From Macrostomum lignano (taxonomy: Eukaryota), in contig NIVC01001864.1 in NCBI GenBank assembly GCA_002269645.1, forward strand, positions 1-46,752: a DNA stretch of 46,752 bases, in the 5' to 3' direction. Positions within the stretch are counted from its first letter, which is position 1, and the number at the start of each line of letters is the position of its first letter. The position numbers were made by a program, and so were the translations under genes. The notes under the pieces were generated by a model. That model saw only the letters and a program-made list of their open reading frames with translations. It was not told the DNA's origin and made no database searches. Positions 19,401-46,752 of the stretch are shown piece after piece.

Positions 19401-22400
19401 TTTACCTGAGCCTCTCCTACCCCTTTTACCTGAGCCTCTCCTACCCCTTTTACCTGAGCCTCTCCTAACCCTCTAGCTGAGCCTCTCCTAACCCTCTAGC
19501 TGAGCCTCTCCTAACCCTCTAGCTGAGCCTCTCCTACCCTCTACCTGAGCCTCTACTACCCTCTACCTGAGCCTCTCCTACCCCTTTTACCTGAGCCTCT
19601 CCTACCCCTTTTACCTGAGCCTCTCCTACCCCTTTTACCTGAGCCTCTCCTACCCCTTTTACCTGAGCCTCTCCTACCCCTCTACCTGAGCCTCTCCTAC
19701 CCCTCTACCTGAGCCTCTCCTACCTCCTCTACCTGAGCCTCTCCTACCACCTCTACCTGAGCCTCTCCTACCTCCTCTACCTGAGCCTCTCCTACCCCTC
19801 TACCTGAGCCTCTCCTACCACCTCTACCTGAGCCTTTCCTACCACCTCTACCTGAGCCTCTCCTACCCTCTACCTGAGCCTCTCCTACCACCTCTACCTG
19901 AGCCTCTCCTACCACCTCTACCTGAGCCTCTCCTACCACCTCTACCTGAGCCTCTCCTACCACCTCTACCTGAGCCTTTCCTACCACCTCTACCTGAGCC
20001 TCTCCTACCCCCTCTACCTGAGCCTTTCCTACCACCTCTACCTGAGCCTCTCCTAACCCTCTACCTGAGCCTCTACTACCCTCTACCTGAGCCTCTCCTA
20101 CCCCTCTACATGAGCCTCTCCTACCCCTCTACCTGAGCCTCTCCTACCCCTCTACCTGAGCCTCTCCTACCCCCTCTACCTGAGCCTTTCCTACCACCTC
20201 TACCTGAGCCTCTCCTAACCCTCTAGCTGAGCCTCTCCTACCCTCTACCTGAGCCTCTACTACCCTCTACCTGAGCCTCTCCTACCCCTCTACATGAGCC
20301 TCTCCTACCCCTCTACCTGAGCCTCTCCTACCCCTCTACCTGAGCCTCTCCTACCCCCTCTACCTGAGCCTCAGCTACCCCTCTACCTGGGCCTCTCCTA
20401 CCCCTTTTACCTGAGCCTCTCCTACCCCTTTTACCTGAGCCTCTCCTACCCCTTTTACCTGAGCCTCTCCTACCCCTTTTACCTGAGCCTCTCCTACCCC
20501 TTTTACCTGAGCCTCTCCTAACCCTCTAGCTGAGCCTCTCCTAACCCTCTAGCTGAGCCTCTCCTAACCCTCTAGCTGAGCCTCTCCTACCCTCTACCTG
20601 AGCCTCTACTACCCTCTACCTGAGCCTCTCCTACCCCTTTTACCTGAGCCTCTCCTACCCCTTTTACCTGAGCCTCTCCTACCCCTTTTACCTGAGCCTC
20701 TCCTACCCCTTTTACCTGAGCCTCTCCTACCCCTCTACCTGAGCCTCTCCTACCCCTCTACCTGAGCCTCTCCTACCTCCTCTACCTGAGCCTCTCCTAC
20801 CACCTCTACCTGAGCCTCTCCTACCTCCTCTACCTGAGCCTCTCCTACCCCTCTACCTGAGCCTCTCCTACCACCTCTACCTGAGCCTTTCCTACCACCT
20901 CTACCTGAGCCTCTCCTACCCTCTACCTGAGCCTCTCCTACCACCTCTACCTGAGCCTCTCCTACCACCTCTACCTGAGCCTCTCCTACCACCTCTACCT
21001 GAGCCTCTCCTACCACCTCTACCTGAGCCTTTCCTACCACCTCTACCTGAGCCTCTCCTACCCCCTCTACCTGAGCCTTTCCTACCACCTCTACCTGAGC
21101 CTCTCCTAACCCTCTACCTGAGCCTCTACTACCCTCTACCTGAGCCTCTCCTACCCCTCTACATGAGCCTCTCCTACCCCTCTACCTGAGCCTCTCCTAC
21201 CCCTCTACCTGAGCCTCTCCTACCCCCTCTACCTGAGCCTTTCCTACCACCTCTACCTGAGCCTCTCCTAACCCTCTAGCTGAGCCTCTCCTACCCTCTA
21301 CCTGAGCCTCTACTACCCTCTACCTGAGCCTCTCCTACCCCTCTACATGAGCCTCTCCTACCCCTCTACCTGAGCCTCTCCTACCCCCTCTACCTGAGCC
21401 TCTCCTACCCCCTCTACCTGAGCCTCAGCTACCCCTCTACCTGGGCCTCTCCTACCCCTTTTACCTGAGCCTCTCCTACCCCTTTTACCTGAGCCTCTCC
21501 TACCCCTTTTACCTGAGCCTCTCCTACCCCTTTTACCTGAGCCTCTCCTACCCCTTTTACCTGAGCCTCTCCTAACCCTCTAGCTGAGCCTCTCCTAACC
21601 CTCTAGCTGAGCCTCTCCTAACCCTCTAGCTGAGCCTCTCCTACCCTCTACCTGAGCCTCTACTACCCTCTACCTGAGCCTCTCCTACCCCTTTTACCTG
21701 AGCCTCTCCTACCCCTTTTACCTGAGCCTCTCCTACCCCTTTTACCTGAGCCTCTCCTACCCCTTTTACCTGAGCCTCTCCTACCCCTCTACCTGAGCCT
21801 CTCCTACCCCTCTACCTGAGCCTCTCCTACCTCCTCTACCTGAGCCTCTCCTACCACCTCTACCTGAGCCTCTCCTACCTCCTCTACCTGAGCCTCTCCT
21901 ACCCCTCTACCTGAGCCTCTCCTACCACCTCTACCTGAGCCTTTCCTACCACCTCTACCTGAGCCTCTCCTACCACCTCTACCTGAGCCTCTCCTACCAC
22001 CTCTACCTGAGCCTCTCCTACCACCTCTACCTGAGCCTCTCCTACCACCTCTACCTGAGCCTCTCCTACCACCTCTACCTGAGCCTTTCCTACCACCTCT
22101 ACCTGAGCCTCTCCTACCCCCTCTACCTGAGCCTTTCCTACCACCTCTACCTGAGCCTCTCCTAACCCTCTACCTGAGCCTCTACTACCCTCTACCTGAG
22201 CCTCTCCTACCCCTCTACATGAGCCTCTCCTACCCCTCTACCTGAGCCTCTCCTACCCCTCTACCTGAGCCTCTCCTACCCCTCTACCTGAGCCTTTCCT
22301 ACCACCTCTACCTGAGCCTCTCCTAACCCTCTAGCTGAGCCTCTCCTACCCTCTACCTGAGCCTCTACTACCCTCTACCTGAGCCTCTCCTACCCCTCTA

Positions 22401-24573
22401 CATGAGCCTCTCCTACCCCTCTACCTGAGCCTCTCCTACCCCCTCTACCTGAGCCTCTCCTACCCCTCTACCTGAGCCTCAGCTACCCTCTACCTGGGCC
22501 TCTCCTACCCCTTTTACCTGAGCCTCTCCTACCCCTTTTACCTGAGCCTCTCCTACCCCTTTTACCTGAGCCTCTCCTACCCCTTTTACCTGAGCCTCTC
22601 CTACCCCTTTTACCTGAGCCTCTCCTAACCCTCTAGCTGAGCCTCTCCTAACCCTCTAGCTGAGCCTCTCCTAACCCTCTAGCTGAGCCTCTCCTACCCT
22701 CTACCTGAGCCTCTACTACCCTCTACCTGAGCCTCTCCTACCCCTTTTACCTGAGCCTCTCCTACCCCTTTTACCTGAGCCTCTCCTACCCCTTTTACCT
22801 GAGCCTCTCCTACCCCTTTTACCTGAGCCTCTCCTACCCCTCTACCTGAGCCTCTCCTACCCCTCTACCTGAGCCTCTCCTACCTCCTCTACCTGAGCCT
22901 CTCCTACCACCTCTACCTGAGCCTCTCCTACCTCCTCTACCTGAGCCTCTCCTACCCCTCTACCTGAGCCTCTCCTACCACCTCTACCTGAGCCTTTCCT
23001 ACCACCTCTACCTGAGCCTCTCCTACCACCTCTACCTGAGCCTCTCCTACCACCTCTACCTGAGCCTCTCCTACCACCTCTACCTGAGCCTCTCCTACCA
23101 CCTCTACCTGAGCCTCTCCTACCACCTCTACCTGAGCCTTTCCTACCACCTCTACCTGAGCCTCTCCTACCCCCTCTACCTGAGCCTTTCCTACCACCTC
23201 TACCTGAGCCTCTCCTAACCCTCTACCTGAGCCTCTACTACCCTCTACCTGAGCCTCTCCTACCCCTCTACATGAGCCTCTCCTACCCCTCTACCTGAGC
23301 CTCTCCTACCCCCTCTACCTGAGCCTCTCCTACCCCCTCTACCTGAGCCTCAGCTACCCCTCTACCTGGGCCTCTCCTACCCCTTTTACCTGAGCCTCTC
23401 CTACCTCCTCTACCTGAGCCTCTCCTACCACCTCTACCTGAGCCTCTCCTACCACCTCTACCTGAGCCTCTCCTACCTCCTCTACCTGAGCCTCTCCTAC
23501 CACCTCTACCTGAGCCTCTCCTACCACCTCTACCTGAGCCTCTCCTACCACCTCTACCTGAGCCTCTCCTACCTCCTCTACCTGAGCCTCTCCTACCACC
23601 TCTACCTGAGCCTCTCCTACCACCTCTACCTGAGCCTCTCCTACCACCTCTACCTGAGCCTTTCCTACCACCTCTACCTGAGCCTCTCCTACCCCCTCTA
23701 CCTGAGCCTTTCCTACCACCTCTACCTGAGCCTCTCCTAACCCTCTAGCTGAGCCTCTCCTACCCTCTACCTGAGCCTCTACTACCCTCTACCTGAGCCT
23801 CTCCTACCCCTCTACATGAGCCTCTCCTACCCCTCTACCTGAGCCTCTCCTACCCCCTCTACCTGAGCCTCTCCTACCCCCTCTACCTGAGCCTCAGCTA
23901 CCCCTCTACCTGGGCCTCTCCTACCCCTTTTACCTGAGCCTCTCCTACCCCTTTTACCTGAGCCTCTCCTACCCCTTTTACCTGAGCCTCTCCTACCCCT
24001 TTTACCTGAGCCTCTCCTAACCCTCTAGCTGAGCCTCTCCTAACCCTCTAGCTGAGCCTCTCCTAACCCTCTAGCTGAGCCTCTCCTACCCTCTACCTGA
24101 GCCTCTACTACCCTCTACCTGAGCCTCTCCTACCCCTTTTACCTGAGCCTCTCCTACCCCTTTTACCTGAGCCTCTCCTACCCCTTTTACCTGAGCCTCT
24201 CCTACCCCTTTTACCTGAGCCTCTCCTACCCCTTTTACCTGAGCCTCTCCTAACCCTCTAGCTGAGCCTCTCCTAACCCTCTAGCTGAGCCTCTCCTAAC
24301 CCTCTAGCTGAGCCTCTCCTACCCTCTACCTGAGCCTCTACTACCCTCTACCTGAGCCTCTCCTACCCCTCTACATGAGCCTCTCCTACCCCTCTACCTG
24401 AGCCTCTTCTACTCCTCTACCTGGGCTTCTCCTACCCCCTCTACCTGAGCTTCTCCTACATGTGCTTTTTTTACCGTGAAATCTCCTAACGGCCTCTACC
24501 AAGTCTCTCCTCCCCTCTCTACCAAGCTGCTCTCTGTTACCTCTCGAATTCTATCCACCAAAAGCCTTCGGAA
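16444..24573 (-). CDS. LRMDA: Leucine-rich melanocyte differentiation-associated protein-like (C10orf11)
   Basis: Exons 17581-17205 and 16588-16444, plus a likely 33-nt first exon at 24573-24541. LRRs followed by the family motif SMMDNPAAPSYFNGASYQEYEDYR|HFVISQ..LQDLDG..VTPNER. No genomic ATG was found (see findings). Confidence 0.8.
16670..17140. repeat. 23-bp minisatellite (TAGGCGTTGCTAAGGGGCGATTC)n
   Basis: Seen directly; in an LRMDA intron. Confidence 0.92.
17664..24460. repeat. 6.8-kb satellite of 22-24-bp units (CTCTACCTGAGCCTCTCCTACCNC) with a ~1,053-bp higher-order repeat
   Basis: The variant unit CAGCTACCCCTCTACCTGGGCC recurs at ~19321, 20374, 21428, 22482, 23353 and 23897. Confidence 0.96.
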
Positions 24574-31648: not shown

Positions 31649-31914
31649 CGCGCGGTACCGGCTGGAAGCTGCATTTTTGCAACACTCAGGGATTTATTTC
31701 ACTCAAGTATTATATAGACTACTTACAGTATTTGAAAGGTGTATGGAATTAGTCCTTGATTAACTGTGAGAAACAATATTGTTCCATAAACATTAGAAAT
31801 TTATGTAATGTGCAATATCGCTTGCTTAACAAATCTGAATGACAACACCTTTGAGGCAAAAAATCACGGCTAGGGGGGAGGGCTTCACAAGCTCGAAATT
31901 TTGCATCGCCAAAA

Positions 31915-33525
31915 AAGTTGGGGTTTGTGAAGCTTCGGTTTGTGAAGTTTGGGGCTTGTGAAGTTTGAGGCTTGTGAAGTTTGGGGTTTGTGAAGTTTGG
32001 GGTTTGTGAAGTTTCGGGATTGTGAAGTTTGGGGCTTGTGAAGTTTGAGGCTTGTGAAGTTTGGGGTTTGTGAAGTTTGGGGTTTGTGAAGTTTGGGGTT
32101 TGTGAAGTTTGGGGTTTGTGAAGCTTCAGGTTTGTAAAGCTTGGGGCTTGTGAAGTTTGGGGTTTGTGAAGTTTCGGGATTGTGAAGTTTGGGGTTTGTG
32201 AAGTTTGGGGTTTGTGAAGTTTGGGGTTTGTGAAGCTTCAGGTTTGTAAAGCTTGGGGCTTGTGAAGTTTGGGGTTTGTGAAGTTTCGGGATTGTGAAGT
32301 TTGGGGTTTGTGAAGTTTGGGGTTTGTGAAGTTTGGGGTTTGTGAAGCTTCAGGTTTGTAAAGCTTGGGGCTTGTGAAGTTTGGGGTTTGTGAAGTTTGG
32401 GGTTTGTGAAGTTTGGGGTTTGTGAAGTTTGGGGTTTGTGAAGTTTGGGGTTTGTGAAGTTTCGGGACAGTGAAGTATGTGGATTGTGAAGTTTCGGGAT
32501 TGTGAAGTTTGGGGTTTGTGAAGTTTGGGGTTTGTGAAGCTTCAGGTTTGTAAAGCTTGGGGCTTGTGAAGTTTCGGGCTTGTGAAGTTTTATTCTGTGG
32601 ATCTTTGGGTTTGTGAAGTTTCGGGCTTGTGAAGTTTTATTCTGTGGATCTTTGGGTTTGTGAAGTTTCGGGCTTGTGAATTTCGGTTTTTGTGAATTTT
32701 TGGGCTTGTGAAGTTTGGATTTGTGAAGTTTTGGGCCTGTGAAGTTTGAGGCTTGTGAAGTTTGGGGTTTGTGAAGTTTGGGGTTTGTGAAGTTTCGGGA
32801 TTGTGAAGTTTGGGGCTTGTGAAGTTTGAGGCTTGTGAAGTTTGGGGTTTGTGAAGTTTGGGGTTTGTGAAGTTTGGGGTTTGTGAAGTTTGGGGTTTGT
32901 GAAGCTTCAGGTTTGTAAAGCTTGGGGCTTGTGAAGTTTGGGGTTTGTGAAGTTTCGGGATTGTGAAGTTTGGGGTTTGTGAAGTTTGGGGTTTGTGAAG
33001 TTTGGGGTTTGTGAAGCTTCAGGTTTGTAAAGCTTGGGGCTTGTGAAGTTTGGGGTTTGTGAAGTTTCGGGATTGTGAAGTTTGGGGTTTGTGAAGTTTG
33101 GGGTTTGTGAAGTTTGGGGTTTGTGAAGCTTCAGGTTTGTAAAGCTTGGGGCTTGTGAAGTTTGGGGTTTGTGAAGTTTGGGGTTTGTGAAGTTTGGGGT
33201 TTGTGAAGTTTGGGGTTTGTGAAGTTTGGGGTTTGTGAAGTTTCGGGACAGTGAAGTATGTGGATTGTGAAGTTTCGGGATTGTGAAGTTTGGGGTTTGT
33301 GAAGTTTGGGGTTTGTGAAGCTTCAGGTTTGTAAAGCTTGGGGCTTGTGAAGTTTCGGGCTTGTGAAGTTTTATTCTGTGGATCTTTGGGTTTGTGAAGT
33401 TTCGGGCTTGTGAAGTTTTATTCTGTGGATCTTTGGGTTTGTGAAGTTTCGGGCTTGTGAATTTCGGTTTTTGTGAATTTTTGGGCTTGTGAAGTTTGGA
33501 TTTGTGAAGTTTTGGGCCTGTGAAG
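31915..33525. repeat. 16-bp minisatellite (TTTGTGAAGTTTGGGG)n with an internal ~781-bp duplication
   Basis: The marker GGGACAGTGAAGTATGTGG occurs at 32464 and 33245. Confidence 0.95.
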
Positions 33526-34599
33526 CTTACTATCTTCGATGAGGCGAAGCGTTAAATTTTTAAACGTTAAGCAATGGTCTTAAACTAAGTTTCTTTCAGA
33601 AGCCTTAATTTCGCAATGCTTCATTGAAAGAGCATTTCTAAACGTGAGAGCTATGCTATAAGCCAGAAATATTCTATATTGTTTGATACAGTGTACATTA
33701 AAATAGGTAGAAAAAAGACGGCACTTCCTACTGCCCAGATAATAGTAGTAGCAATAGGATGCTTAGCCAATTTAGTGAGATTCCTTCAAAGCAAAAAATG
33801 AGTACCAATACGGTAATTTTAGAAGCCATAACTACATGACAATAAAAGCGCTTGGCAAAAATAACAAAGCCATAGCGAGCACCTGCTAACACATAAATAT
33901 GTAAATAACCAACGTGTCACGCCAAATGTATTTTTTATACTAAATTTATTACAATTATATTTATAAAGTTATACAGAATAATCAATCCGGAGCCTTGCCT
34001 TGCCCCTAACTTTATTCTATATGCAATACAGACAAGTTTGTAATAACCGGGGGAAATATTACATGCTCGCTACTGGTCGTCAGTAGTACGTATAGATTCT
34101 TTAATTAATCTTAGTTTGGAGAAATGGGGGCAGTCAAAGGTGAAATTGCGTATACTCGTAATATACAAAGATGCTAAAAATGATGCTAACCCTGAAAGGA
34201 CAACAGAAGGCCTTCCCCCGCCAGTGGATGGGATAAATATGGAGAATGGAAATACCATACAAACTTTTTTTGATTCCTTTGCCTTTATGTGAATTTTGTC
34301 CGACTAAAACGGTTACCTAGGCCAAGAAGCACCCCAGAGTCACAATTGCGTCGCTCCAAAGTCACTCCACAGGTAAAATAGGAAAGAAGCTTATCTAGTG
34401 CGCCTCTACAATGACTCTGGAGCCGTAGGGCGTCACTTTATGCCAATTTACTGTCATTTTCAGGGTTGCATTAGGCCCTAGTATTAGAAAAGATAGCTAA
34501 GATAGACACTCAATTTGTGTCCCAACTAATCAGGGCACCCTAGTTCAACCGTGAAATCGATTCAAAAGACCTTAATTCTGTATATATCTAGTCAGTAGT

Positions 34600-36702
34600 T
34601 CAGTTATAACCGCTGGGCACGCCGCGCCGCCGCCTGTCCTGCAGGAGGGCGGTCCTGCCGATCAGCTGGTGCACAGTGTTAGTGGCCTGGATCAGGGTGC
34701 CAAGCAGAGCTGTCAGCTGCACATCGTTGCACTGACGATAGAATGACCGATAGAAATCTTCACCGCCGCACACAGGCAGCTGGTCGGCTAGTCGGCGAAG
34801 GTCGCGCAGAATAGCGTGACACGGCGGCAGCCGGCCGGCGGACACGTCGCGCAGATAGGACAGTAGTAGGCCAAGGCGGCTGTACAGGGCGCGGACAGCG
34901 CTGCGCTGTACGGCTAGGGCTTCGGCAACCTAGCGGGTAAATATCAAAAAAATGAATAATGCCTTTTATTATTGATGCAATTTGTATTGAAGTTAATATT
35001 CCTTTTTGCGGCCTAGTTGGTACTGCAAGCTTTCAATTCAATCATAGATACGGAAATCAGACTTGCGAGACTGAAAATTGTCGACACTCGTTGGCAACAA
35101 GTACAAAAAGATTAGCGATGAAGTGGCTACAAGTGAAAGTCCGTACTGTTTACTCGATTCGAAGGCGGTACGAACTTACAAATTCGGCTTTTTGGCCATA
35201 GACATTGAGTCTTAGCGGGCGCAGCTAAATATGCTTGCTCGCTTGCTTTTAGGACTACATAAGGCATTGAGCAATACCAGACCGTAACTTCTTAATGCAT
35301 CATGCAGTTTTTATACTTTGTGGGGCTTATGACAACAATGCCTCGAGCTCGCGACAAACCTTAGTCCCACCGCTGCCGGACATATCCCTGGACACGTGGT
35401 CAACCCCGATTCGCTCGGCCTCCTCGGTGGCCAGACTGTAAGGCAGGGGTATGAACAGACACTTGGGCGAGCCGTTCACCAGTTCTAGCACGGATTCGAA
35501 TAGACGAACCGGCAGGGATTCGGCCGTGGTAGCCGCTGAGCTGGGCAGCAGGCGGAGCAACACCGGCATTAGTGGCGAGTCCGACATTACAAGATCGCAC
35601 ACCTGCTTGTGCAAGGCTGCCTCAGTGTCGGTCACCTGTGGGTGCGGTTTTTAGGACTAATGCATGATTAATATTGATTTTGGCGCAATTATTGACGATA
35701 ATTCAATATTGAGTAGCCTAGTGGTTAGAGCGTCGGACCCACGACTTGAAGGTCGGGGGTTCGACTCCCGATCCCACTGGAACAATTTGTCCTTGGGCAA
35801 GACACTCAACTCTGTATTGCTGAGCTGTCGGTTGCACATCTGGCCCAATTAGGGCAGGTGTAATCAATTATTTTTATTTTTATTATTAATATTGAGTAGC
35901 TCAGCCGCAGCTATTGCGCGGCGCATCTGAAGGCTGCGTACGGCTGTTCAGTTCAAAGACTGGGGGGTCGTCAATTACCCCAGCGAATACTGGCACTCAT
36001 TTTACAGTTGGGTGGACTTGCTCAAGGACAAATTGTTCCGAGTGGGTCGAGAATCGAACCCCCGACCTCTCAGTCTTGAGTCCGACGCCCTAACCACTAC
36101 GTACAATCCCCTCTTCGGAAAAACAACTTTTATATTTTCATCACTGCATTTTTCTACTTAAAGTAGAAAATTTGGAATTTTATTACTATATTTAAAAAAA
36201 TGAACAACTTAAGAATATTATTTCAGATACAGGGCAGGGGCTGTGTAATTAGATTGCTGGTGATCACGACTACTTCCTTGTCCCAACATTTTACCTCTTC
36301 AGGCAGGTCGCAGCAGTAGTACCAGCCAACCACAGTGAGGCTAGGATAGACCTCGCGATACTGGGCCAGCCTAGTCTGAAAGAATCCAGCATCAATAGTG
36401 TCAATATCGGCTGTCTGCGGATTAGCCGGCGAGAAATATGGCGCCAATTCGAAACAGTTGCAAATTTCTACTAGGCGACCTTCCTGCTTGCCTAACAGGG
36501 CGCCTAGTACCCGATTGTGACCGAACTGCAGCCGGCAGCGGGTCCAGTGATCGGAGATGGTTAGCAGTACCAGCGGGTGCAGGGCGGCGTTCACGGACGG
36601 CTGCACGCCTTGCGGAGCCATGTGGCCCGGCGAGCCTGCGGACAAAGAGTCTGAAGCTGATGCGGCAGCTGTCCCGGAGGTTGTAGAAGCGTCTACTTCC
36701 AT
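34600..36702 (-). CDS. COPS6: COP9 signalosome subunit 6 (MPN domain)
   Basis: Exons 36702-36295, 35635-35360, 34929-34600. Motifs LHPLVLLTISDHWTR, LGALLGKQEGR.VEI.N.FEL, YSLATEEAERIGVDHVSR, FYRQCNDVQLTALLGTL. Confidence 0.93.
35718..35887 (+). mobile_element. tRNA-derived CORE-like SINE with 13-bp target-site duplication
   Basis: A box TAGCCTAGTGG, B box GGTTCGACTCC, CORE-like TCCTTGGGCAAGACACTCAAC, T/A-rich tail. Flanked by AATATTGAGTAGC at 35705-35717 and 35888-35900. Confidence 0.72.
35901..36112 (-). mobile_element. Related tRNA-derived SINE in opposite orientation (COPS6 intron 1)
   Basis: Head GGGGATTGTACGTAGTGGTTAGGGCGTCGGAC...GGGGGTTCGATTCTCGACCC, then GGAACAATTTGTCCTTGAGCAAG (shared with the adjacent copy) and CACCCAACTGTAAAATGAGT. 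Confidence 0.7.
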
Positions 36703-36834
36703 TGTTTTACAGATATGGTTTGGCTTGAATACTGGAATAATAGGTGCGGTACTGTTGAAAATGCGCTTTGTAAATCTAACTTCAATGTAATTAAATTCGA
36801 GCAACCTAATGGCATTTTGGAAATAAAGATAAGA

Positions 36835-37125
36835 GAATAGGAAGGCTGCGGGATAGAGAGGGGAGATGAGAGAGCGGAAGGGTATGGATAGTGAATCGAG
36901 AGAGTGGGATGGGGTGGAAAGGGAGATGAGGGAGAGCGGGCGTGGGATGGAGAGGGAGATGAGGGAGAGTGGGATGGGATAGAGAGGGAGATGAGGGAGA
37001 GTGGGATGGGATGGAGAGGGAGATGAGGGAGAGTGGGATGGGATGGAGAGGGAGATGAGGGAGAGTGGGATGGGATGGAGAGGGAGAAGAGGGAGAGTGG
37101 GAGATCATGAGGCGAGAGAGAGTAG
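36835..37125. repeat. 32-bp purine-rich minisatellite (GGGAGATGAGGGAGAGTGGGATGGGATGGAGA)n
   Basis: Seen directly; between the zinc-finger gene and COPS6. Confidence 0.9.
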
Positions 37126-37449
37126 GCTGTGAAAGAGATAGCTGCAAGCATCTCTAACAGGTTTACTGCTACATACAGCTTCTAGTGTTAAAAGTCAATA
37201 TAAAACGTCGAGTAGACAAGTGAAAGCAATAAACACACGGCATATCAATTCGTAAAGTTTATTTTCTGCAATTGTATGACGCAATTGACAAATTAGGGAA
37301 TTTATACAATATTAACTTGCTATATATTAAAAATATTTAATGCTGATTGACTTAAATAACAGGAATAATGCGGAACTATATTTTAGTTCAACTGCACCAA
37401 AAGTGCCCATTGTTTTCCCCTTTGCCAAGGGCACTCTGCTTTTGTCGAG

Positions 37450-40400
37450 TTAAGTAGCCGCGTCGCTTTTGTGCAGCATTCGGAAGTGCCGTAACAAATT
37501 GCCGCGCTGGGAGAACCGAATGCCGCACACTTTGCACAGGTGCGGCCTGGGCTTGTCGGAGTGCAGCAGCATGTGCGTCACTAACGAGGATCGCTGGGTA
37601 AAACTAATATTGCAACTTGAGCACACGTGCTTAGAGTCCTCCCTACTGTTGTGCGACTCCTCGTGACGGCGGAGGTGCGACTGACAGGTGAACTCGCGAT
37701 CACAGGCGTAGCACTTGTGCAAACCCTGCAGCTTACTTGGCCGCTTGGCTGCCGACGAGGGTGCTGAGGCGATGGAATCGACCGTGCCGGCCGCCTCGCA
37801 AGTGTGGGAAGCGTAAGCTAGCAAACTATTGAAGAACTGCAAGCACTGGTCGCAGCGGTAGCTTCGCTTGTAGCTGCTGCTGATGACGGCGGCGGAGGCG
37901 GCTGCAGACGACGACCCGGCGGTGCCCGATGTCGGCGGAGCGTCGGGCAGGCGTCGATAATTCCGACCGCCAGTACGCTGGATGGCGGAACCGTTTGACG
38001 CCGACGATGAAGATGCTAGCAAAGTTGTCTGCGGCGGTGGCGGCGGAGGACCGGGCTCGCCGCTGAGCTCCTTCAGGAGTGACTCGCTGGCAGCCTGACC
38101 AGCCAAGTCGGAACCGTCAAACTGCTGTCCGGCTGTGCAGCTGTCCGGTTGCTGCTGCTGCTGCTGTTCAGCTATGACAACCATCTTGTCGACGGCGTCG
38201 ATGTCGATTTCTAACGCCGGGTCGACAACAGCCGATGTGCTGGAGGCCGCAACGGCCGCAGTCGGAACAGTCGATGCCGAAGCATTAGAGGCAGAAGCAG
38301 CGGCGGTTGCAGCGGCGGTGGCGGCAACAGCTGACACGGAGCTGACAGTTGAAGGTGCCGACGTAGTCTGGAAACCGTAGCCTTGCAGCAGAAGCGACAG
38401 GTCGCTGTGATCGGACTCAGCTAGGAGCAGAGTGGGGCCCCCGACTGACCCGGCCGTACCGGAGCTCACGATGTCGCCGGAGGCGGTGAGCATGTCGGTG
38501 TTGCTTATAACGTATAACACATTGCCAGAATCTACACTAAGAACCAATTGCTGCTGTTGTTGTTGTTGCTGTTGCTGAGACTGTTGATGGAATTGCTGCT
38601 GCTGAAGGATCAACTCCTGCTGCTGCTGCTGTTGTTGCTGCTGTTGTTGCTGCTGCTTCTTCTGCAACTGGCGCTGCCTGTACCGCTGCCGCCTTCGCTG
38701 CTGCTGCAGAAGATCCCTCTGCGGTGGCTGCCTCTGCCGCCGATTCGGCTGTCGAGACCCCGTTGCCGCTGTTGCCGATGACGCCGACGCTGAGCCCGTC
38801 GCCGTCTCGACTTCCGACGTAGACGGCGCGGGCCCGGATGGGGCGGCTTCCTCAGCAACTGCGGACAGCTGCTGCCGTTGCCGATTACCGTCCGCACCAA
38901 CAGGAATGGGCCGAACCCTAGCAGTGGTCGGATCCCGTTTAAGCAGCATATTGTGGCTCTTTAAATAGTGCCGCTTTCTACTCGACGAAGAGTGAAAACT
39001 GTCCGAGCACAGCTGGCACTGGTAGGGCTTGGCGTCGGCGTGCAAATTCATATGGGTTCGCAGGCTGCTCTTCGATGAGAAGTAGTTCTTGCATAGATGG
39101 CAGGCCAGCAGCTTCACCTGCGAGATTGGAGAGTTGCCCCCGAAAATTCGGGTATAGCAAAGTTTAATAATGATATAGTGCTTTGGTCTCTATGGTGCTG
39201 GCGCCCACTGACACAATTCTCTATTATTGCTATTAATTTACTGTTGCTTTAACATCTGTGCCGCGTGGCAGCAAGAGTTACGGGGGGGGGGGTAAAAGGC
39301 GATTCCCTAGGGGGAGGGTGTTAAAGGGCGCATTCCGATTGGGAGGGGGTTAAAGGGCGATTCCACAGGGGGAGGGGGTCAGAGGGCGATTCCACAGGGG
39401 GAGGGGGTCAGAGGGCGATTCCACAGGGGGAGGGGTCAGAGGGCGATTCCACAGGGGAGGGGGTCAGAGGGCGATTCCACAGGGGGAGTGGGTTAAAGGG
39501 CGATTTCCCACGGGGAGGGGTTAAAGGGCGATCCCCAGGGGGTGGGGGTGTTAAAGGGCGATTCCCCAGGGGAGGGGGTTAAAGAGCGACTTCCAGGCGG
39601 GGATTAAGGGGCGGCTCCCAGACGAGGGTTAGAGGAATGTGCAGAAGTCTGCAGAATCTTTAGAGGCCCTAAAGAAGCGATGAAAATGCTGGTACACAAA
39701 AATTCAATTAACAACTCAAAACCCACCTGTTGACTGTGCAGCCTGCTCATGTGATACTTCAACGAGCTGCTAGCCGTGAAAGTTTTCTGACAGACGCTAC
39801 AACTAAACGGCCTGGCCCCGATGTGCACGTTGCTGTGCCGCACAAGTTCAACCCGTCTGGAAAACTGGGCGTGACAGATGTCGCACTCGAATCCAGCGCC
39901 GGCAGTGTCGCTAACGCCGCCCTCCTCGGCGACACCGACGCGCCGATGATGAGCAGCGGACGAGGCGGAGGCAGCCGCGGCGGTGAAGCCAGCTAGTTCA
40001 TCATCGGTGTGCCGAGATTTGGCGGCTCTGACTAGCATGCGCTGCGAGACGGTCATGTCAGTGGTGAGCGCCGATTGGGCCAGGCTGCGAGTCTCGTCCT
40101 CCGGCAGGCGAAGCTGGCAGCGCCGCTCCCGGACAAAGTCCCGACTGCCCAGCTGGTAGTGGCGCGCCTTGAAGCATTTGTGGGATTGAGATGGAGCTCA
40201 AATCTGTGCTATAAATACAAGACCAATACAAGCTACTTAAGCTCATTCCATATGCGTAACACCATAGTCCAAATCATGATAATGTTGTCCAATCCAAGCC
40301 ACGCTTAATTACGATTCAAACTATTTCAATTCTAATTCTATTTCTAACACGCTTAAATTCTAATCCAAGCCACTCCATTCCGATCTAAGCCACTACATTC

Positions 40401-43400
40401 CAATCCAAGCCACTCTATTCCAATCCAAGCCACTGCATTCCAATCCAAGCCACTGCATTCCAATCTAAGCCACTCCATTCCAATCCAAGCCACTGCATTC
40501 CAATCTAAGCCACTCCATTCCAATCCAAGCCACTGCATTCCAATCGATCTAAGCCACTCCATTCCAATCGATCCAAGCTACTCCATTCCAATCGATCCAA
40601 GCCACTCCATTCCAATCGATCTAAGCCACTCCATTCCAATCGATCCAAGCCACTCCATTCCAATCGATCCAAGCCACTCCATTCCAATCCAAGCCACTGC
40701 ATTCCAATTGATCCAAGCCACTCCATTTCAATCTAATCCACTCCATTTCAATCTAAGCCACGCCATTCCAATCCAAGCCACTCCATTCCAATCCAAGCCA
40801 CTCCATTCCAATCCAAGCCACTCCATTCCAATCTAAGCCACTCCATTCCAATCGATCCAAGCCACTCCATTCCAATCCAAGCCACTCCATTCCAATCCAA
40901 GCCACTCCATTTCAATCCAAACCAATTCATTCCAATCTAAGCCACTAAATTCCAATCGAAGTCATGAAATTTCAATCTAAGCCACTTTATGCCAGTCAAA
41001 TCAGCTAAATACTAATCCAAGCCACTGAATTTCATTTCCCAACCCAAGCCAATCAAGCAATAACCCCTGGCTCACTTTTTTCAAATCCACAATCAGACTT
41101 TCCCGTTCGGAGCGCAGTTCACCAATATGCAATTGCAAATGCTTAATATTGTGAAAGTCCCGCTCGCAATGGTTGCACCGAAAATGGCGCCTATCATTGT
41201 GCCGCATAGTCGTGTGCACAGCCAGTGCGCTCTGGCTAACGAACTCTTGGCCGCAGTCTCGGCACTGCTTTGGCTGGTCGGGCTGATGAGCCAGCTGGTG
41301 ATTTTTCAACGCCAGCTCAGATAGGAAGGCCTTGCCGCACAGTTCGCACGAGTGCCTCTCCTGGTGATGCTCAGTGCGCACGTGCAATTGCAATTGTTTA
41401 GCTTTGTAGAAGCTGCGCTGGCATTTAGCGCAGCCGTAGTAAGCGTCTAGGCTAATCTGCGAAAGGTAAAATTAAGGGAGCAAAGGCCGTCAGTTGAAGC
41501 AGTTCTTTAAGACTACTCGAGGTATAGATACACTATATATCTGCGCAGGCAGATTCAGGGAGAGAAAGCGGAGAGGCAGATTCAGGGACAGAAAGCGGAG
41601 AGGCAGATTCAGGGACAGAAAGCGGAGAGGCAGATTCAGGGACAGAAAGCGGAGAGGCAGATTCAGGGACAGAAAGCGGAGAGGCAGATTCAGGGACAGA
41701 AAGCGGAGAGGCAGATTCAGGGACAGAAAGCGGAGAGGCAGATTTAGGGAGAGAAAGCGGAGAGGCAGATTCAGGGACAGTAAGCGGAGAGGCAGATTCA
41801 GGGAGAGAAAGCGGAGAGGCAGATTCAGGGACAGTAAGCGGAGAGGCAGATTCAGGGAGAGAAAGCGGAGAGGCAGATTCAGGGACAGTAAGCGGAGAGG
41901 CAGATTCAGGGAGAGAAAGCGGAGAGGCAGATTCAGGGACAGTAAGCGGAGAGGCAGATTCAGGGACAGAAAGCGGAGAGGCAGATTCAGGGACAGAAAG
42001 CGGAGAGGCAGATTCAGGGACAGAAAGCGGAGAGGCAGATTCAGGGACAGAAAGCGGAGAGGCAGATTCAGGGACAGTAAGCGGAGAGGCAGATTCAGGG
42101 ACAGAAAGCGGAGAGGCAGATTCAGGGAGAGAAAGCGGAGAGGCAGATTCAGGGAGAGAAAGCGGAGAGGCAGATTCAGGGACAGAAAGCGGAGAGGCAG
42201 ATTCAGGGACAGAAAGCGGAGAGGCAGATTCAGAGAGAGAAAGCGGAGAGGCAGATTCAGGGAGAGAAAGCGGAGAGGCAGATTCAGGAGAAGAGAAGCG
42301 GAGAAGCAGATTCAGGGAGAGAAAGCGGAGAGGCAGATTCAGGGACAGTAAGCGGAGAGGCAGATTCAGGGAGAGAAAGCGGAGAGGCAGATTCAGGAGG
42401 AGAAAGCGGAGAGGCAGATTCAGGGACAGAAAGCGGAGAGGCAGATTCAGAAGGAGAAAGCGGAGAGGCAGATTCAGGGACAGAAAGCGGAGAGGCAGAT
42501 TCAGGGACAGAAAGCGGAGAGGCAGATTCAGGGACAGAAAGCGGAGAGGCAGATTCAGGGAGAAAGCGGAGAGGCAAAGAGCAGATTCAGGGACAGTAAG
42601 CGGAGAGGCAGATTCAGGGACAGAAAGCGGAGAGGCAGATTCAGGGACAGAAAGCGGAGAGGCAGATTCAGGGACAGAAAGCGGAGAGGCAGATTCAGGG
42701 ACAGAAAGCGGAGAGGCAGATTCAGGGACAGAAAGCGGAGAGGCAGATTCAGGGAGAGAAAGCGGAGAGGCAGATTCAGGAGAGAAAGCGGAGAGGCAGA
42801 TTCAGGGAGAGAAAGCGGAGAGGCAGATTCAGAGAGAGAAAGCGGAGAGGCAGATTCAGGGACAGTAAGCGAGAGGCAGATTCAGGGAGAGAAAGCGGAG
42901 AGGCAGATTCAGGGACAGTAAGCGAGAGGCAGATTCAGGGAGAGAAAGCGGAGAGGCAGATTCAGGGACAGTAAGCGGAGAGGCAGATTCAGGGAGAGAA
43001 AGCGGAGAGGCAGATTCAGGAGAGAAAGCGGAGAGGCAGATTCAGGGACAGTAAGCGGAGAGGCAGATTCAGGCAGAAAGCGGAGAGGCAGATTCAGGGA
43101 GAGAGACCACAGACGCAGTTTATGCTCACCAGATCGTCACTCTTCGGTATAGGATATTGATTAACAGTTGCCGTGCCATCGCTAGCGTACAAAGCCTCAG
43201 TCAGCTGAGGAAAATCAGCGGCAGACAGTACGCTAGACAGTGGCAAGTTGAGATCCGGTTCAGTAACTGTAGCCGGGTTAGCCGCCCGATTCAATGACAG
43301 AGAGTTATGATTATTAGCTGCGATTGCGTTATCGCCAGACGGAATTCTTCCGAGGCTAGACGAGCCGGACACAGCAGCGGCAGAGGCGGCAGCAGTGGAG

Positions 43401-44897
43401 GTAACGGATTGTACCGGCATAGATGACACCGGCACGGAGGCGGCCGCATCCAAGCTGGGATCGCCCAGATGGGTGGGCACAACAGCATCTAGACTGTCCA
43501 TCCCGGTAAGGCAGTTGTTTAACAGCCGATCGAAATCCTGCTCGATAACAGGGGCCGAGCCGTCCTGCAGATTCGATAGGAACGAAGCATCAGTCGGGCA
43601 CAGGCTGGTCAGCGCGTCCTGCATCATGTCGTCGGTTGGTAGGACAGGAGCCGGGGCCTGCGGTGGGTCCGGGACCAGAGCCAGTGCGTAGCTGGTGCGC
43701 GGCACCGGGTCGCCGCGGCGAGTGTGCGCGATGGAGTGGCGCTTGCACTTGGTTCGGGTGCGGAAGCCCTGCGCGCAGTGCGGATGGTGGAAATTATGCG
43801 GAGTCTGCTGTTGCTGCGGCAGCGGAGATTCGATTAGATATCGCTGCAGATGGGGGTACTAAACTCGAACTATTCCCTATTAAGGTTACCGCACATTTAA
43901 ACTAAGCGGATTATGCCTTTTGATGAATGGAAGTACGTAGGGTATTGCTACCCCATAATTTAGAGCCCGAGTATTGTTAACGCTCCCATCCTTCGGAGAG
44001 TATTGCTGTCAGATCCATCAGTGGGTATTGCTATGCCAGATCCATCAGTGGGTATTGCTATGCCAGATCCATCAGTGGGTATTGCTATGCCAGATCCATC
44101 AGTGGGTATTGCTATGCCAGATCTATCAGTGGATATTGCTATGCCAGATCCATCAGTGGGTATTGTTATGCCAGATCTATCAGTGGATATTGCTATGCCA
44201 GATCCATCAGTGGGTATTTCTATGCCAGATCTATCAGTGGATATTGCTATGCCAGATCCATCAGTGGGTATTTCTATGCCAGATCTATCAGTGGATATTG
44301 CTATGCCAGATCTATCAGTGGGTATTGCTACAGTACCTTGTGGCAGACTTTGCAGAAGAAGCTGACGCCGTCTCCATGCCAGTTGTCAATGTGCCGATTC
44401 AAATTGCTGCGACTTTTAAACGACATATTAGGACAGCGGTCGCACACGTAGGGCCGCTGGCCGCCGTGCACGGCTCGAATGTGCTGCTGCAATACATTCG
44501 AGGTGCTGTACATTCGATGGCACATCTGGCACTTGTGCGGCTTCAAATTCGAATGGCTCATAGCGTGGCGCTGGAGGTGGCCTTTCTTTTTAAAGATTTT
44601 GCCGCAATCTTTGCACCGATGCGGCCGGCTGGGATCCGGGGCGTCGGCTACAACGCCCTGACTGCGGCCGGGAGCGGACGGCACCAGCACCCGCTGGAAC
44701 TGGCTGTCGTAGACAATCTCCAACGGGTCTAAGGCCGGCGCCGGGTCCAGCTGCGGCTCCAGTACGCGCGACACGGTGCGCAGATCCCGGGCCGGATGAG
44801 TGCGCATGTGATATTTCAAATTGCTCTTAGTGATGAAGCGATGGAAGCAGTATTTGCAACTGTAGGGATAGCTCTGCTCGTGGCGTCGCAAGTGCAC
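37450..44897 (-). CDS. Large multi-cluster C2H2 zinc-finger protein (about 16-18 fingers, polyQ/polyA linkers); 5'-partial
   Basis: Exons 44897-44337, 43843-43130, 41456-41123, ~40190-39727 (acceptor uncertain), 39117-37450. Repeated CxxC-x12-HxxxH fingers, e.g. HRCKDCGKIFKKKGHLQRHAMSH and HLCKVCGIRFSQRGNLLRHFRMLH. The 44897 exon begins mid-finger after an AG. Confidence 0.88.
39283..39603. repeat. G-rich 28/29-bp minisatellite (GAGGGCGATTCCACAGGGGGAGGGGTCA)n
   Basis: Seen directly; intronic. Confidence 0.9.
40352..40985. repeat. 20/24-bp minisatellite (ATTCCAATCCAAGCCACTCC)n
   Basis: Seen directly; intronic. Confidence 0.93.
41547..43102. repeat. 27-bp minisatellite (GGCAGATTCAGGGACAGAAAGCGGAGA)n
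   Basis: Seen directly; intronic; source of the RFRDRKRRG ORF. Confidence 0.96.
43990..44330. repeat. 27-bp minisatellite (CCAGATCCATCAGTGGGTATTGCTATG)n
   Basis: Seen directly; begins a few nt into the intron after the 44337 donor. Confidence 0.93.
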
Positions 44898-44904
44898 CTG
44901 TGTA

Positions 44905-45233
44905 TTAGTTAGGTAAGTTAATTACTTAGTCTGCAGGGGCCCGGTGGGCCGTAGCCCAGTGGTCCAGCGAATCTCGGCTTGTCTCTGCTCGTGCAATTAA
45001 CGCCTCTTAAGGCCCAACCCCCCAAGGCAAATTGAAGTGTACATGCCTAACAATAAATAAAGCTAGGGCCGCTGTACACTACTGTGTGAGTGTGTGCCTG
45101 TGCGTACGTATGTACGTATCCGCGCCCTTGTTTGCCTGATCAGTGAAGTAGGGCAACAGCGATATACCACTGAGTAGCACGGAATCGAACCCGGGTTGTT
45201 TAGCGCAGTGAGCTACTCTGCCACCTTGAGCAT
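44905..45233 (-). mobile_element. Probable tRNA-headed SINE-like element
   Basis: B box GGTTCGATTCC (45191-45181), A-box-like TGGCAGAGTAG (45223-45213), and a simple-repeat-like tail TAAGTAATTAACTTACCTAACTAA. The extent of the body is inferred. Confidence 0.45.
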
Positions 45234-45258
45234 CGGTAAATAATAACAAACTTAATTC

Positions 45259-45445
45259 TAATGTAGATCAGGTTGGTTACCAGTGAACTTATTTGTTTGC
45301 GAAGTGTATTAAGTACAAGTGTACTATAACATCGTAAAAGTGCACCGGCCGTAAGCTGAACAAAATTGATTATTATATCTCCTTAAATTTTTAATAAATC
45401 ATACGAAATTTCATTTTAATGATATCCCACATGATCTAAGGAGAA
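45259..45445 (-). ncRNA. Candidate box H/ACA snoRNA, copy 1
   Basis: 5' hairpin closed by TCTCCTTA/TAAGGAGA; H box ATAATA (45376-45371); 3' hairpin with pocket CTTACG / AACCAAC; ACA at 45264-45262, 14 nt from the top of the pocket. Confidence 0.72.
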
Positions 45446-45524
45446 TTTTGGATATTTTATCAAATAAAATATACTTGTTTTAATTACAGTTGATGCTACT
45501 ATGACTGCCAGTAGTAGTATATTA

Positions 45525-45718
45525 ATTTGTTGATCAGGTTGGTTACCAGTGAACTTATTTTATCGCAAATTTAAGTACAAGTGTACTTTAACATCAAAAA
45601 AGTGCACCGGCCGTAAGCTGATCAAGCTGTATTAATATTATCTCCTTAAAGTATTATTAAATCATACATTCGATACCAAATATTTGCATGAATGATATCG
45701 AGTATGAATTAAGGAGAA
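45525..45718 (-). ncRNA. Candidate box H/ACA snoRNA, copy 2
   Basis: TCTCCTTAA/TTAAGGAGA hairpin; ANANNA hinge; 7-bp lower stem TGATCAG/CTGATCA; same pocket; ACA at 45530-45528. Confidence 0.75.
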
Positions 45719-45783
45719 ATAGACACTATCCTACTGAGACTATAAGTAGTCCCGAGTCGGACTATGAGTAAAAATGCTCAATA

Positions 45784-45986
45784 ACCTGTAGGTCAGGTTG
45801 GTTACCAGTGTACTTATTATCCTTGATGAATTAAGTACACGTGTACTTAACCATCGCAATAAAAGTGCACCGGCCGTAAGCTGACCAATTGAACAATAAT
45901 TCATTATAATTTTCTCCGTTGGAAACAAATCAAATCGATGACGCAATTAAAATTATGCCAACGGACATCGATTAGTAAACGGAGAC
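45784..45986 (-). ncRNA. Candidate box H/ACA snoRNA, copy 3
   Basis: TCTCCGTT/AACGGAGA hairpin (compensatory relative to copies 1-2); AAATTA hinge; lower stem GGTCAG/CTGACC (compensatory); same pocket; ACA at 45789-45787. Confidence 0.72.
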
Positions 45987-46251
45987 CTGCTTTAGAAATT
46001 TCTCGTCACTTTTTTAAAAATTGTTGGAAAGATTGATTACCGATGCACTTATAGTTGAAAAAAGTACATCGGCCAGTAATCTAACCATATTATTATACTC
46101 CGCTAAACTAATTAGATATGTAAGCCATGCTTGATCTCAACCAGAAAGCCATTTGGAATATGTGCACTGGCAGATGCAGGCGGCGGAGATATGTCTACTA
46201 CAGTCAGTCTGGGGTCAGTGGTTAAACTCCGAAATTCAGGCATACCACTTA

Positions 46252-46645
46252 GGGGATTCCTGACAGGGATTCCCCTGGAGTGAATTCCTGACTGGGATTC
46301 CCCTGGAGTCCCCTGGGATTCCCCTGGAGTGAATTCCTGACTGGGATTCCCCTGGAGTGAATTCCTGACTGGGATTCCCCTGGAGTGAATTCCTGACTGG
46401 GATTCCTCTGAAGGGATTCCTGACTGGGATTCCCCTGGAGTGAATTCCTGACTGGGATTCCCCTGGAGTGAATTCCTGACTGGGATTCCCCTGGAGGGCA
46501 TTCCGCTGACTGGGATTTCCCTGAAGGGGGATTCCATCAACTGAGATTTCCTTGAGGGCATTACGCTGACTGGATTTCCACTGTCTGGATTCAGCTGACT
46601 GAGATTCCACTAGGGGATTCCCATGGCTGGGATTTCCCTGATGGA
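46252..46645. repeat. 28-bp minisatellite (GGGATTCCCCTGGAGTGAATTCCTGACT)n
   Basis: Seen directly. Confidence 0.9.
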
Positions 46646-46752
46646 ATTCCACCGATTGTTTTTCTACGTTTTCATTCTGAAATCATTAATAACTTTTAAT
46701 TCAAAGTATACATTCGAGCATTACCTTAAGGCTAGCCTGACTAGATAATTTT

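Follow-up and report, generated by a model that had tools for sequence, protein, structure and literature searches.

An intronic array of four structured units resembling box H/ACA small nucleolar RNAs in the flatworm Macrostomum lignano

Results

Four Related Units Lie Head to Tail in an Intron of a Zinc-Finger Gene

The sequence analyzed here is a stretch of 46,752 nucleotides from the flatworm Macrostomum lignano (contig NIVC01001864.1, positions 1 to 46,752; hereafter the window), and our subject is an array of structured repeats near its end, read on the minus strand, which may encode a family of box H/ACA small nucleolar RNAs (snoRNAs). The array runs from 46189 to 45262 and consists of four related units arranged head to tail with a period of 235-266 nt. 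An initial annotation of this region had described three tandem copies spaced by ~260 nt. These were readily recovered as direct-repeat families in units 1-3 (spacings of 266/259 and 262/263 nt) and through two exact words, the 19-mer GCTTACGGCCGGTGCACTT and the 18-mer CACTGGTAACCAACCTGA, each with exactly three occurrences, all on the minus strand, against expected numbers of 0.00 and 0.06, respectively; a fourth unit, at 46189-46022, had been missed. The array region has a G+C content of 36.9%, compared with ~52% in the adjoining sequence and ~45-67% elsewhere in the window, and the program-made list of open reading frames (ORFs) holds none of at least 110 aa within 45259-45986, in keeping with the AT-rich, non-coding character first ascribed to it.

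The array is inside an intron of a gene for a ~1,900-aa zinc-finger protein, on the sense strand. The downstream exon of this multi-zinc-finger host gene, located at 44337..44897 on the minus strand, starts with VHLRRHEQSYPYSCKYC and was placed from the ORF list, from a tblastn match to residues 695-881 of the UniRef model P0283, and from an exon junction shared by the models P0283 and P0284, in which '...KKLSSQASLK' ('...CPQCSKKLSSQASLK') is joined to 'VHLRRHEQSYPYSC' at 44897 (K|VHLRRHEQ). The 3′ splice site AG is found at 44899-44898, 364 nt beyond the ACA of unit 1. Because the P0283/P0284 junction maps to 44897, downstream of the array, the units lie in sense orientation within an intron of at least 1.85 kb, whose in-window part (44898..46752, minus strand) includes, besides units 1-4, a tRNA-like fragment and a minisatellite with a 28-nt repeat (from 46256 to 46523 and further). 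In two further contigs, designated L009 and L006, the NCBI gene ranges (1923 and 1929 aa) run off the start of the locus across the array. Together with the junction, they give backing to an intronic sense location that the initial annotation had only surmised, with the caveat that the contig of the window itself lacks the upstream exons.

Unit 1 (45262..45444, minus strand like all the features that follow; 183 nt) opens with a 5′ hairpin at 45444-45378, closed by the basal stem UCUCCUUA/UAAGGAGA, and continues with a hinge at 45377-45362 that carries AUAUAA/AUAAUA. Its 3′ hairpin comprises a lower stem at 45361-45356 / 45271-45266 (GUUCAG/CUGAUC, with one U.U mismatch), an open internal loop, or pocket, formed by CUUACG (45355-45350) and AACCAAC (45278-45272), and an upper stem at 45349-45338 / 45290-45279. 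In unit 2 (45528..45717, 190 nt) the 5′ hairpin occupies 45717-45641 and the hinge 45640-45624; the lower stem is at 45623-45618 / 45537-45532 (GAUCAG/CUGAUC), the pocket at 45617-45612 and 45544-45538, and the upper stem at 45611-45600 / 45556-45545. Unit 3 (45787..45985, 199 nt) has its 5′ hairpin at 45985-45913, on the basal stem UCUCCGUU/AACGGAGA, and its hinge at 45912-45887, followed by a lower stem at 45886-45881 / 45796-45791 (GGUCAG/CUGACC), a pocket at 45880-45875 and 45803-45797 and an upper stem at 45874-45863 / 45815-45804. The ACA trinucleotides of these three units are located at 45264-45262, 45530-45528 and 45789-45787, each time one nucleotide past the lower stem. The stretch CUUACGGCCGGUGCACUU is a sequence suited to probing for any RNAs made from the units.

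Unit 4 (46022..46189, 168 nt) is divergent. It has the 5′ stem CUCCGC/GCGGAG, the hinge UAUAAUAAUAU and an ACA at 46024-46022, and its 3′ hairpin combines a lower stem with four of six pairs (GGUUAG/CUUUCC), the pocket AUUACUG / AAUCAAU, an upper stem paired at 12/12 positions (GCCGAUGUACUU/AAGUGCAUCGGU) and an apical region of only 11 nt. Thus the order of parts and the 14-nt ACA offset of units 1-3 are kept, the apical hairpin is deleted and the pocket is altered. A profile of units 1-3 matched this 3′ hairpin in an nhmmer search (46103-46021, E = 0.005). Unit 4 is probably decaying. The same profile revealed no further copy in ~66 kb of non-redundant sequence of this genome, and look-ups using the ORFs that overlap the array led to no further contigs.

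Each Unit Folds into Two Hairpins, Preferentially on the Host Sense Strand

Box H/ACA RNAs are defined by two hairpins joined by a hinge with an ANANNA box, an ACA located 3 nt before the 3′ end, and pocket loops that place the target site 14-16 nt upstream of the box (PMC1865073). The hairpin-hinge-hairpin-tail organization was found in all four units on the minus strand: both the minimum-energy and the centroid folds gave two hairpins in 4/4 units, and the RNAalifold consensus of units 1-3 agrees. Each unit begins with a 5′ hairpin, whose closing stem is 8 bp long (UCUCC.../...GGAGA). An A+U-rich hinge leads to the 3′ hairpin, and this is followed by one nucleotide and ACA. In the 3′ hairpin, the open 6x7 loop CUUACG / AACCAAC separates a 6-bp lower stem from an upper stem of 12 bp, on which sits an apical region that includes a small hairpin. 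An ANANNA sequence begins 0-2 nt past the 5′ stem (AUAUAA/AUAAUA in unit 1, AUAAUA/AUAUUA in unit 2, AAAUUA in unit 3 and AUAAUA in unit 4), and the distance from the top of the 3′ pocket to ACA is 7 (loop) + 6 (lower stem) + 1 = 14 nt in all units. The order hairpin - ANANNA - hairpin - ACA and the invariant loop with its top 14 nt from ACA, both already read from this strand in the initial annotation, are therefore upheld by the folds and by the fixed ACA offset.

The units are more stable than expected from their composition, and this stability is strand-biased. Measured against 200 dinucleotide shuffles, the z-scores of units 1-4 are -3.9, -5.9, -5.8 and -4.5 on the minus strand and -1.3, -3.4, -4.3 and -2.8 on the plus strand, whose folds are 4-7 kcal/mol weaker in every unit. 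Unit 2 reaches a minimum free energy of -52.7 kcal/mol on the minus strand, and none of its 200 shuffles was equally stable; a separate run for this unit gave z-scores of -5.8 on the minus and -3.6 on the plus strand. In the upper stem, which in units 1-3 contains two G-U pairs and one mismatch per copy (C.U or C.A), 11-12 of the 12 positions pair on the minus strand (12/12 in unit 4), versus 9-10/12 on the plus strand, where G-U becomes A.C. The dependence of this stem on G-U pairs of the minus strand, as originally proposed, stands at 11/12 against 9-10/12 pairs, with the correction that each copy has one mismatch. We rejected the plus strand as the functional strand, since its folds are weaker in all units and, by eye, its second hairpin is not followed by an ACA at a steady offset. 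Sequence between the units is unstructured (z of -1.8 to +0.7 for the spacers), and spacer hairpins considered as conserved processing signals were not significant.

Conservation Follows the 3′ Hairpin and Ends at the ACA

Conservation among units 1-3 is very uneven. The spacers are 43-50% identical, that is, essentially unalignable, the hinge 48-65%, the interior of the 5′ hairpin 56-62% and the apical region 69-77%, whereas the 3′ hairpin has two arms, each made of lower stem, loop and upper stem, that are 96% and 90-97% identical despite being separated by 43-47 less-conserved bases. Similarity between units sets in at the 5′ stem and ends at the ACA. This confirms the divergence of loops and spacers reported at the outset, and it is unlike the behavior of a neutral tandem repeat, which should diverge evenly; gene conversion over one contiguous tract would not spare the apical region.

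Base changes in the stems tend to come in pairs. For units 1-3, RNAalifold predicted 45 pairs, eight of them with changes on both sides. Pair 2 of the lower stem reads U.U, A-U, G-C and G-C in units 1-4, and in the upper stem of unit 4 pair 5 changes from G-C to A-U, pair 4 from G-U to G-C and pair 8 from a mismatch to U-G. In the 5′ basal stem the inner three pairs, counted by eye, differ on both sides among UCUCCUUA/UAAGGAGA, UCUCCGUU/AACGGAGA and CUCCGC/GCGGAG. The covariation quoted initially, GAUCAG/CUGAUC versus GGUCAG/CUGACC and the first two of these basal stems, is real, with the correction that the lower stem of unit 1 has a U.U mismatch. The pair tally for the four units was scripted by hand, since a MAFFT alignment of all four misplaced the 3′ arm of unit 4, setting it on the apical hairpin. 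This occurs because, in each unit, one 8-mer recurs in four variants of alternating orientation (AAGTGCAC, AAGTACAC, AAGTACAA and AAGTTCAC) that make up the arms of both the upper stem and the apical mini-hairpin, so that the 3′ hairpin resembles a palindrome duplicated within itself.

The array is also present, at the corresponding position, in the contigs L009 and L006, at 99.5% and 97.4% identity, respectively, with all pockets unchanged. The L006 copy carries 12 substitutions in 640 nt, one of which is in the conserved arms, and two substitutions in its unit 1 keep pairing (U.G->C-G and U-A->U.G). These copies are too alike, and the changes in L006 too few, to inform on covariation. Among public metagenome contigs, the 19-mer from the 5′ arm of the 3′ hairpin had one match, a chance hit in a G+C-rich bacterial coding region, and no related match.

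A Candidate Target at the 3′ End of 18S rRNA

According to the standard pairing scheme, the target is bound 5′ of its U by the 3′ pocket strand and, beyond the nucleotide that follows this U, by the 5′ pocket strand, which for CUUACG / AACCAAC gives 5'-GUUGGUU-U-N-[CU]GU[AG][AG]G-3'. We scanned a ribosomal RNA (rRNA) set from other animals, made up of a complete crab rDNA unit, a partial mollusc large-subunit (LSU) sequence and partial fish small-subunit (SSU) and LSU sequences, located by means of the well-known spurious ORF of rDNA and confirmed with Rfam. Ranked by total pairs, the best sites reached 10/13, no better than those of shuffled pockets. Only one site had at least three contiguous pairs on each side of U-N, namely AACAAGGUU-UC-CGUAGGUGAACC (AACAAGGUU-UC-CGUAGGUGAA) at the 3′ end of 18S rRNA, where ...GGUU-UC-CGUAGG... 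offers 4+6 contiguous pairs, nine Watson-Crick and one G.U. A 4+6 match, only modestly better than chance, was obtained with 1.9-2.2% of composition-preserving pocket shuffles and in 2.8% of shuffled rRNA. Guide duplexes of ~4-10 bp per side are normal (PMC9226516). The site belongs to the 5′ strand of helix 45 and has the sequence of the eukaryotic SSU consensus in Rfam, and is therefore to be expected in the flatworm as well. Its unpaired U, the third U of GGUUUCCGUAGG, is what we take to be U1840 in human numbering, 29 nt before the 18S 3′ end and two nucleotides before the acetylated C1842. We regard this helix-45 target as a lead, not as a finding.

In unit 4 the pocket has changed and does not fit the 18S site any more. 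The best match of this pocket is the conserved stretch ...CCUGAUU-UU-CAGUACG... in 28S rRNA (5+5 Watson-Crick pairs), which we discarded, as 9-11% of shuffles do equally well; the U in question presumably lies 2 nt from known pseudouridines in human numbering, and not on one. Likewise, we discarded C/D- or U3-type elements with long complementarity to rRNA, because the longest runs, of 9-10 nt, are at chance level.

Discussion

We lean, with modest confidence, toward the view that the array is a cluster of lineage-specific box H/ACA snoRNA paralogues, three of them functional or intact and one decaying, expressed from the host intron. In such a case the host pre-mRNA would be transcribed and the core proteins dyskerin/Cbf5, Nop10 and Nhp2, followed by Gar1, would assemble on each hairpin-hinge-hairpin-ACA unit. 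After splicing, the unprotected, unstructured spacers would be removed by endonucleolytic cuts between units, which would be needed because several units share one intron, together with exonuclease trimming, to leave mature RNAs of ~185-200 nt with a 3′ end 3 nt past the ACA. The 3′-hairpin loop (5′ CUUACG, 3′ AACCAAC) would act as the guide, pairing with 5'-..GGUU-U-N-CGUAGG..-3' and offering the unpaired U to dyskerin; the best candidate for this U is the one at the base of 18S helix 45, and if that site is not used the RNA would be an orphan guide.

Several observations weigh against this assignment. To begin with, the geometry is cheap. A strict descriptor of the 3′ hairpin (an upper stem of 12 bp with no more than one mismatch, a lower stem of 6 bp paired throughout, and ACA 14-16 nt away) had 0.7 matches per composition-matched shuffled window and matched at five other places in the real one, and a looser descriptor had ~25 matches in shuffled windows versus 45 in the real window. 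The case therefore has to rest on stability, strand bias, the pattern of conservation and covariation, and of these the last is limited to few independent events because only four related paralogues are available. The ANANNA boxes are weakly informative, as the hinge is 75-80% A+U and the motif is expected there by chance. The 5′ hairpin is a nearly continuous stem with no two-sided loop, either in the folds or in the RNAalifold consensus, just as the initial annotation had noted, so each unit offers one candidate guide only. Lengths of 183-199 nt exceed those of most animal H/ACA RNAs, and the upper stem and apical mini-hairpin are conserved as strongly as the guide loop, something that a guide model does not need. 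The Rfam search that the initial annotation had proposed gave no match at gathering thresholds in the whole window, and at E <= 10 the interval 44900-46300 had matches at chance level only (E 0.13-9.5), with no H/ACA family and no microRNA on the units. In the L006 copy of unit 2 (183-375; NIVC01004182.1), several of the five substitutions break pairs, among them a U->C at pair 11 of the upper stem and a U->A in the 5′ hairpin. The 5′ exons of the host are absent from the contig of the window, and hence this copy of the array may not sit in an intact gene. Finally, transcription, processing, protein binding, target and catalysis are deduced here from sequence. All in all, the box H/ACA identity first proposed for the units is partly supported: the features testable in the sequence fit it, and it is weakened by the lack of an Rfam family, by a geometry common by chance and by a 5′ hairpin with no pocket. 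The other sites retrieved with the strict descriptor are + 31674-31775, + 35718-35784, - 27989-27909, + 32396-32469 and + 33177-33250, two of them within a 16-nt tandem repeat; five such sites are only slightly more than shuffling leads one to expect.

Among the alternatives, the one that best survives, which we consider unlikely and yet worth keeping in view, is that the units are a hairpin-rich tandem repeat devoid of H/ACA function, such as the relic of a satellite or of a non-autonomous transposon with internal tandem repeats, or else a structured intronic RNA of another class, the ACA and the A-rich hinge being incidental. The surroundings suit it well: the window is crowded with tandem repeats, also in introns of the host gene, and the array is an A+T-rich island that adjoins a tRNA-like fragment. 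Also in its favor are an H/ACA geometry that chance provides about once per window, the missing Rfam match and the pocketless 5′ hairpin, and the upper-stem and apical arms, whose relatedness as variants of the 8-mer AAGTNCAC suggests an internal duplication of a palindrome. What speaks against such a relic is that a neutral repeat should diverge evenly, whereas in the array two separated arms have kept 90-97% identity next to saturated spacers, and conservation stops exactly at the ACA. In addition, double changes maintain pairs, G-U pairs and folding energies favor the host sense strand in 4/4 units, and neither a further copy in the ~66 kb searched nor a related metagenome match to the 19-mer came to light. 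As for other classes of RNA, we considered a spliced-leader or Sm-site RNA and set it aside, as an AAUUUUG-like motif is present in unit 1 only.

Much less probable, in our judgment very improbable, is an element acting at the level of DNA, in which nested half-site palindromes of the AAGTNCAC type would bind a dimeric protein, for instance as an intronic enhancer or silencer array or as an element that extrudes a cruciform. Each unit does carry four such half-sites in alternating orientation, and unit 3 has a perfect 20-bp palindrome, TTAAGTACACGTGTACTTAA. However, the upper stem depends on G-U pairs, which turn into A.C mismatches in DNA or on the opposite strand; conservation extends to the internal loop and the ACA, neither of which is palindromic; and in the 5′ hairpin pairing persists through changes of sequence, which points to structure and not to a sequence-specific site. 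Least probable of all is an intronic cluster of microRNA-like or other Dicer/Drosha-processed hairpins with the 24-28-nt arms of the 3′ hairpin as mature products: the hairpins are tandem, conserved and intronic, with both ~24-28-nt arms highly conserved, but an animal microRNA precursor is a ~60-70-nt hairpin with a near-continuous ~22-bp stem plus a basal stem and one arm conserved as the mature microRNA, a description that does not fit a 3′ hairpin that spans ~100 nt, is interrupted by a 6x7 internal loop in mid-duplex and bears a second hairpin at its tip, next to a 5′ hairpin of non-conserved sequence, and no microRNA family in Rfam matches the units.

Returning to the H/ACA reading, the units resemble eukaryotic box H/ACA snoRNAs in their fold, in the ANANNA after the 5′ hairpin and the ACA after the 3′ hairpin, in an open loop 14 nt from ACA, in the conservation of guide loop and boxes between paralogues whose stems covary, and in their intronic sense location. 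They differ from them in matching no Rfam family, in having a single pocket, 183-199 nt, a long upper stem and a conserved apical mini-hairpin, and in being known from sequence alone. Tandem polycistronic snoRNA clusters occur in plants, trypanosomatids and Euglena; as in those, the array would comprise tandem guide-RNA genes on a precursor cut between units, although clusters of that kind are transcribed independently and as a rule contain C/D together with H/ACA genes, whereas the flatworm array is intronic. The H/ACA-like RNAs of trypanosomatids are single hairpins with an AGA box (PMC2613932), unlike the two-hairpin, ACA-bearing units of the flatworm. Another parallel is offered by intronic snoRNA gene clusters, which are known in rice and Drosophila (PMC2780460); they were first described in rice and then, for box H/ACA genes, in Drosophila melanogaster (Huang et al., 2004, as cited in PMC5932544 and PMC2780460). 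Those clusters and ours have in common several related snoRNA isoforms in a protein-coding host gene, as opposed to the single snoRNA per intron of vertebrates, and the array, if expressed as proposed, would need cuts between units just as those clusters do. The difference is that here four head-to-tail copies share one intron of a zinc-finger gene in a flatworm.

The helix-45 lead deserves separate comment. The helix-45 cytidine is acetylated in most eukaryotes, and SNORD13 and snR45 are box C/D RNAs that base-pair on either side of C1842, in 18S helix 45, and help NAT10 with its acetylation. The candidate target of our pocket is the same 18S stretch, with the two unpaired nucleotides immediately 5′ of the acetylated cytidine. 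The resemblance ends there, as the units are H/ACA-like and not C/D, the duplex predicted here would pair the acetylated C, and the overlap depends on a match of ~2% chance. That H/ACA-type particles are aimed at the 5′ strand of helix 45 (GGUU + CGUAGG), leaving U-C unpaired beside the acetylated cytidine, is in our opinion highly unlikely. If they were, they might pseudouridylate a position that carries no known modification elsewhere, or might serve as a chaperone of helix-45 folding or modification, perhaps replacing the C/D-type acetylation guide. Counting against this, and against the guide model in general, the 18S match is a ~2% chance event that uses 4/7 letters of the 3′ pocket strand, and to our knowledge the candidate uridine is not a known pseudouridine in any organism. 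Platyhelminthes are absent from the phyla with a SNORD13 homologue listed in a published survey (PMC9226516).

Under the H/ACA reading, the array is probably a new, if rather ordinary, member of a class already known to be very large, with four tandem copies in one intron as its somewhat unusual trait. Flatworm snoRNAs are almost unannotated, our full-text literature search found no snoRNA catalogue for M. lignano, and no Rfam model recognizes the units. Confirmation of the array would extend the class by a lineage-specific H/ACA family, and would provide a clear animal example of several guide-RNA genes from a single intron, requiring cuts between units and not simple trimming. The proximity of the predicted target to the acetylated cytidine of 18S helix 45 turns the target into a specific, one-position prediction. 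Conversely, if the RNAs are not expressed, the locus still cautions that chance by itself produces H/ACA-like geometry about once per 50-100 kb.

Other Features of the Locus

Downstream of the zinc-finger gene lies a gene for a COP9 signalosome subunit 6 (CSN6). The two UniRef models (window 34612-44897, minus strand) fuse both genes (...RFSQRGN|FTAPIIPVFKPNHICKTMEV...), and NCBI models keep the zinc-finger gene and a 346-aa CSN6 separate, ~0.6 kb apart; the fusion is probably a read-through or a mis-merged model. The CSN6-like exon of the window is 99% identical to M. lignano proteins, and a word-index search with CSN6 gave matches of ~45% identity only. For the zinc-finger exon there were no homologues at E <= 1e-10, and residues 1-694 of P0283 were not found by tblastn in the window, in L009, in L006 or in L008, the locus that continues the same contig beyond the window. 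There, beyond the array, the contig is the reverse complement of the window: positions 32886-43320 match L008 3410-13857 (47953-58400 of record NIVC01001864.1) at 98% identity. The inverted copy carries a second CSN6 gene, and the unique 4.6-kb center (record 43321-47952) holds the zinc-finger exon and the RNA array. This arrangement is either a real duplication or rearrangement, or a chimeric long-read assembly.

Directly after unit 1, at 45190-45240 on the minus strand, there is a tRNA-like fragment with a box A-like GTAGCTCA, a box B-like GGTTCGATTCC and a CA-rich tail at ~45080-45130. It was called neither by ARAGORN, which found no tRNA, nor by Rfam, and we discarded a dispersed short interspersed element, as no second copy exists in the ~110 kb examined. 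The introns of the zinc-finger gene are full of minisatellites with a period of 20-29 nt (41547-43104, 44010-44330, 46256-46650, 40357-40986 and 39282-39595), one intron array holding a 27-mer in 57.7 copies. Such arrays are extremely abundant across the whole window, one of them, at 17672-24459, having 289 copies of a 24-mer.

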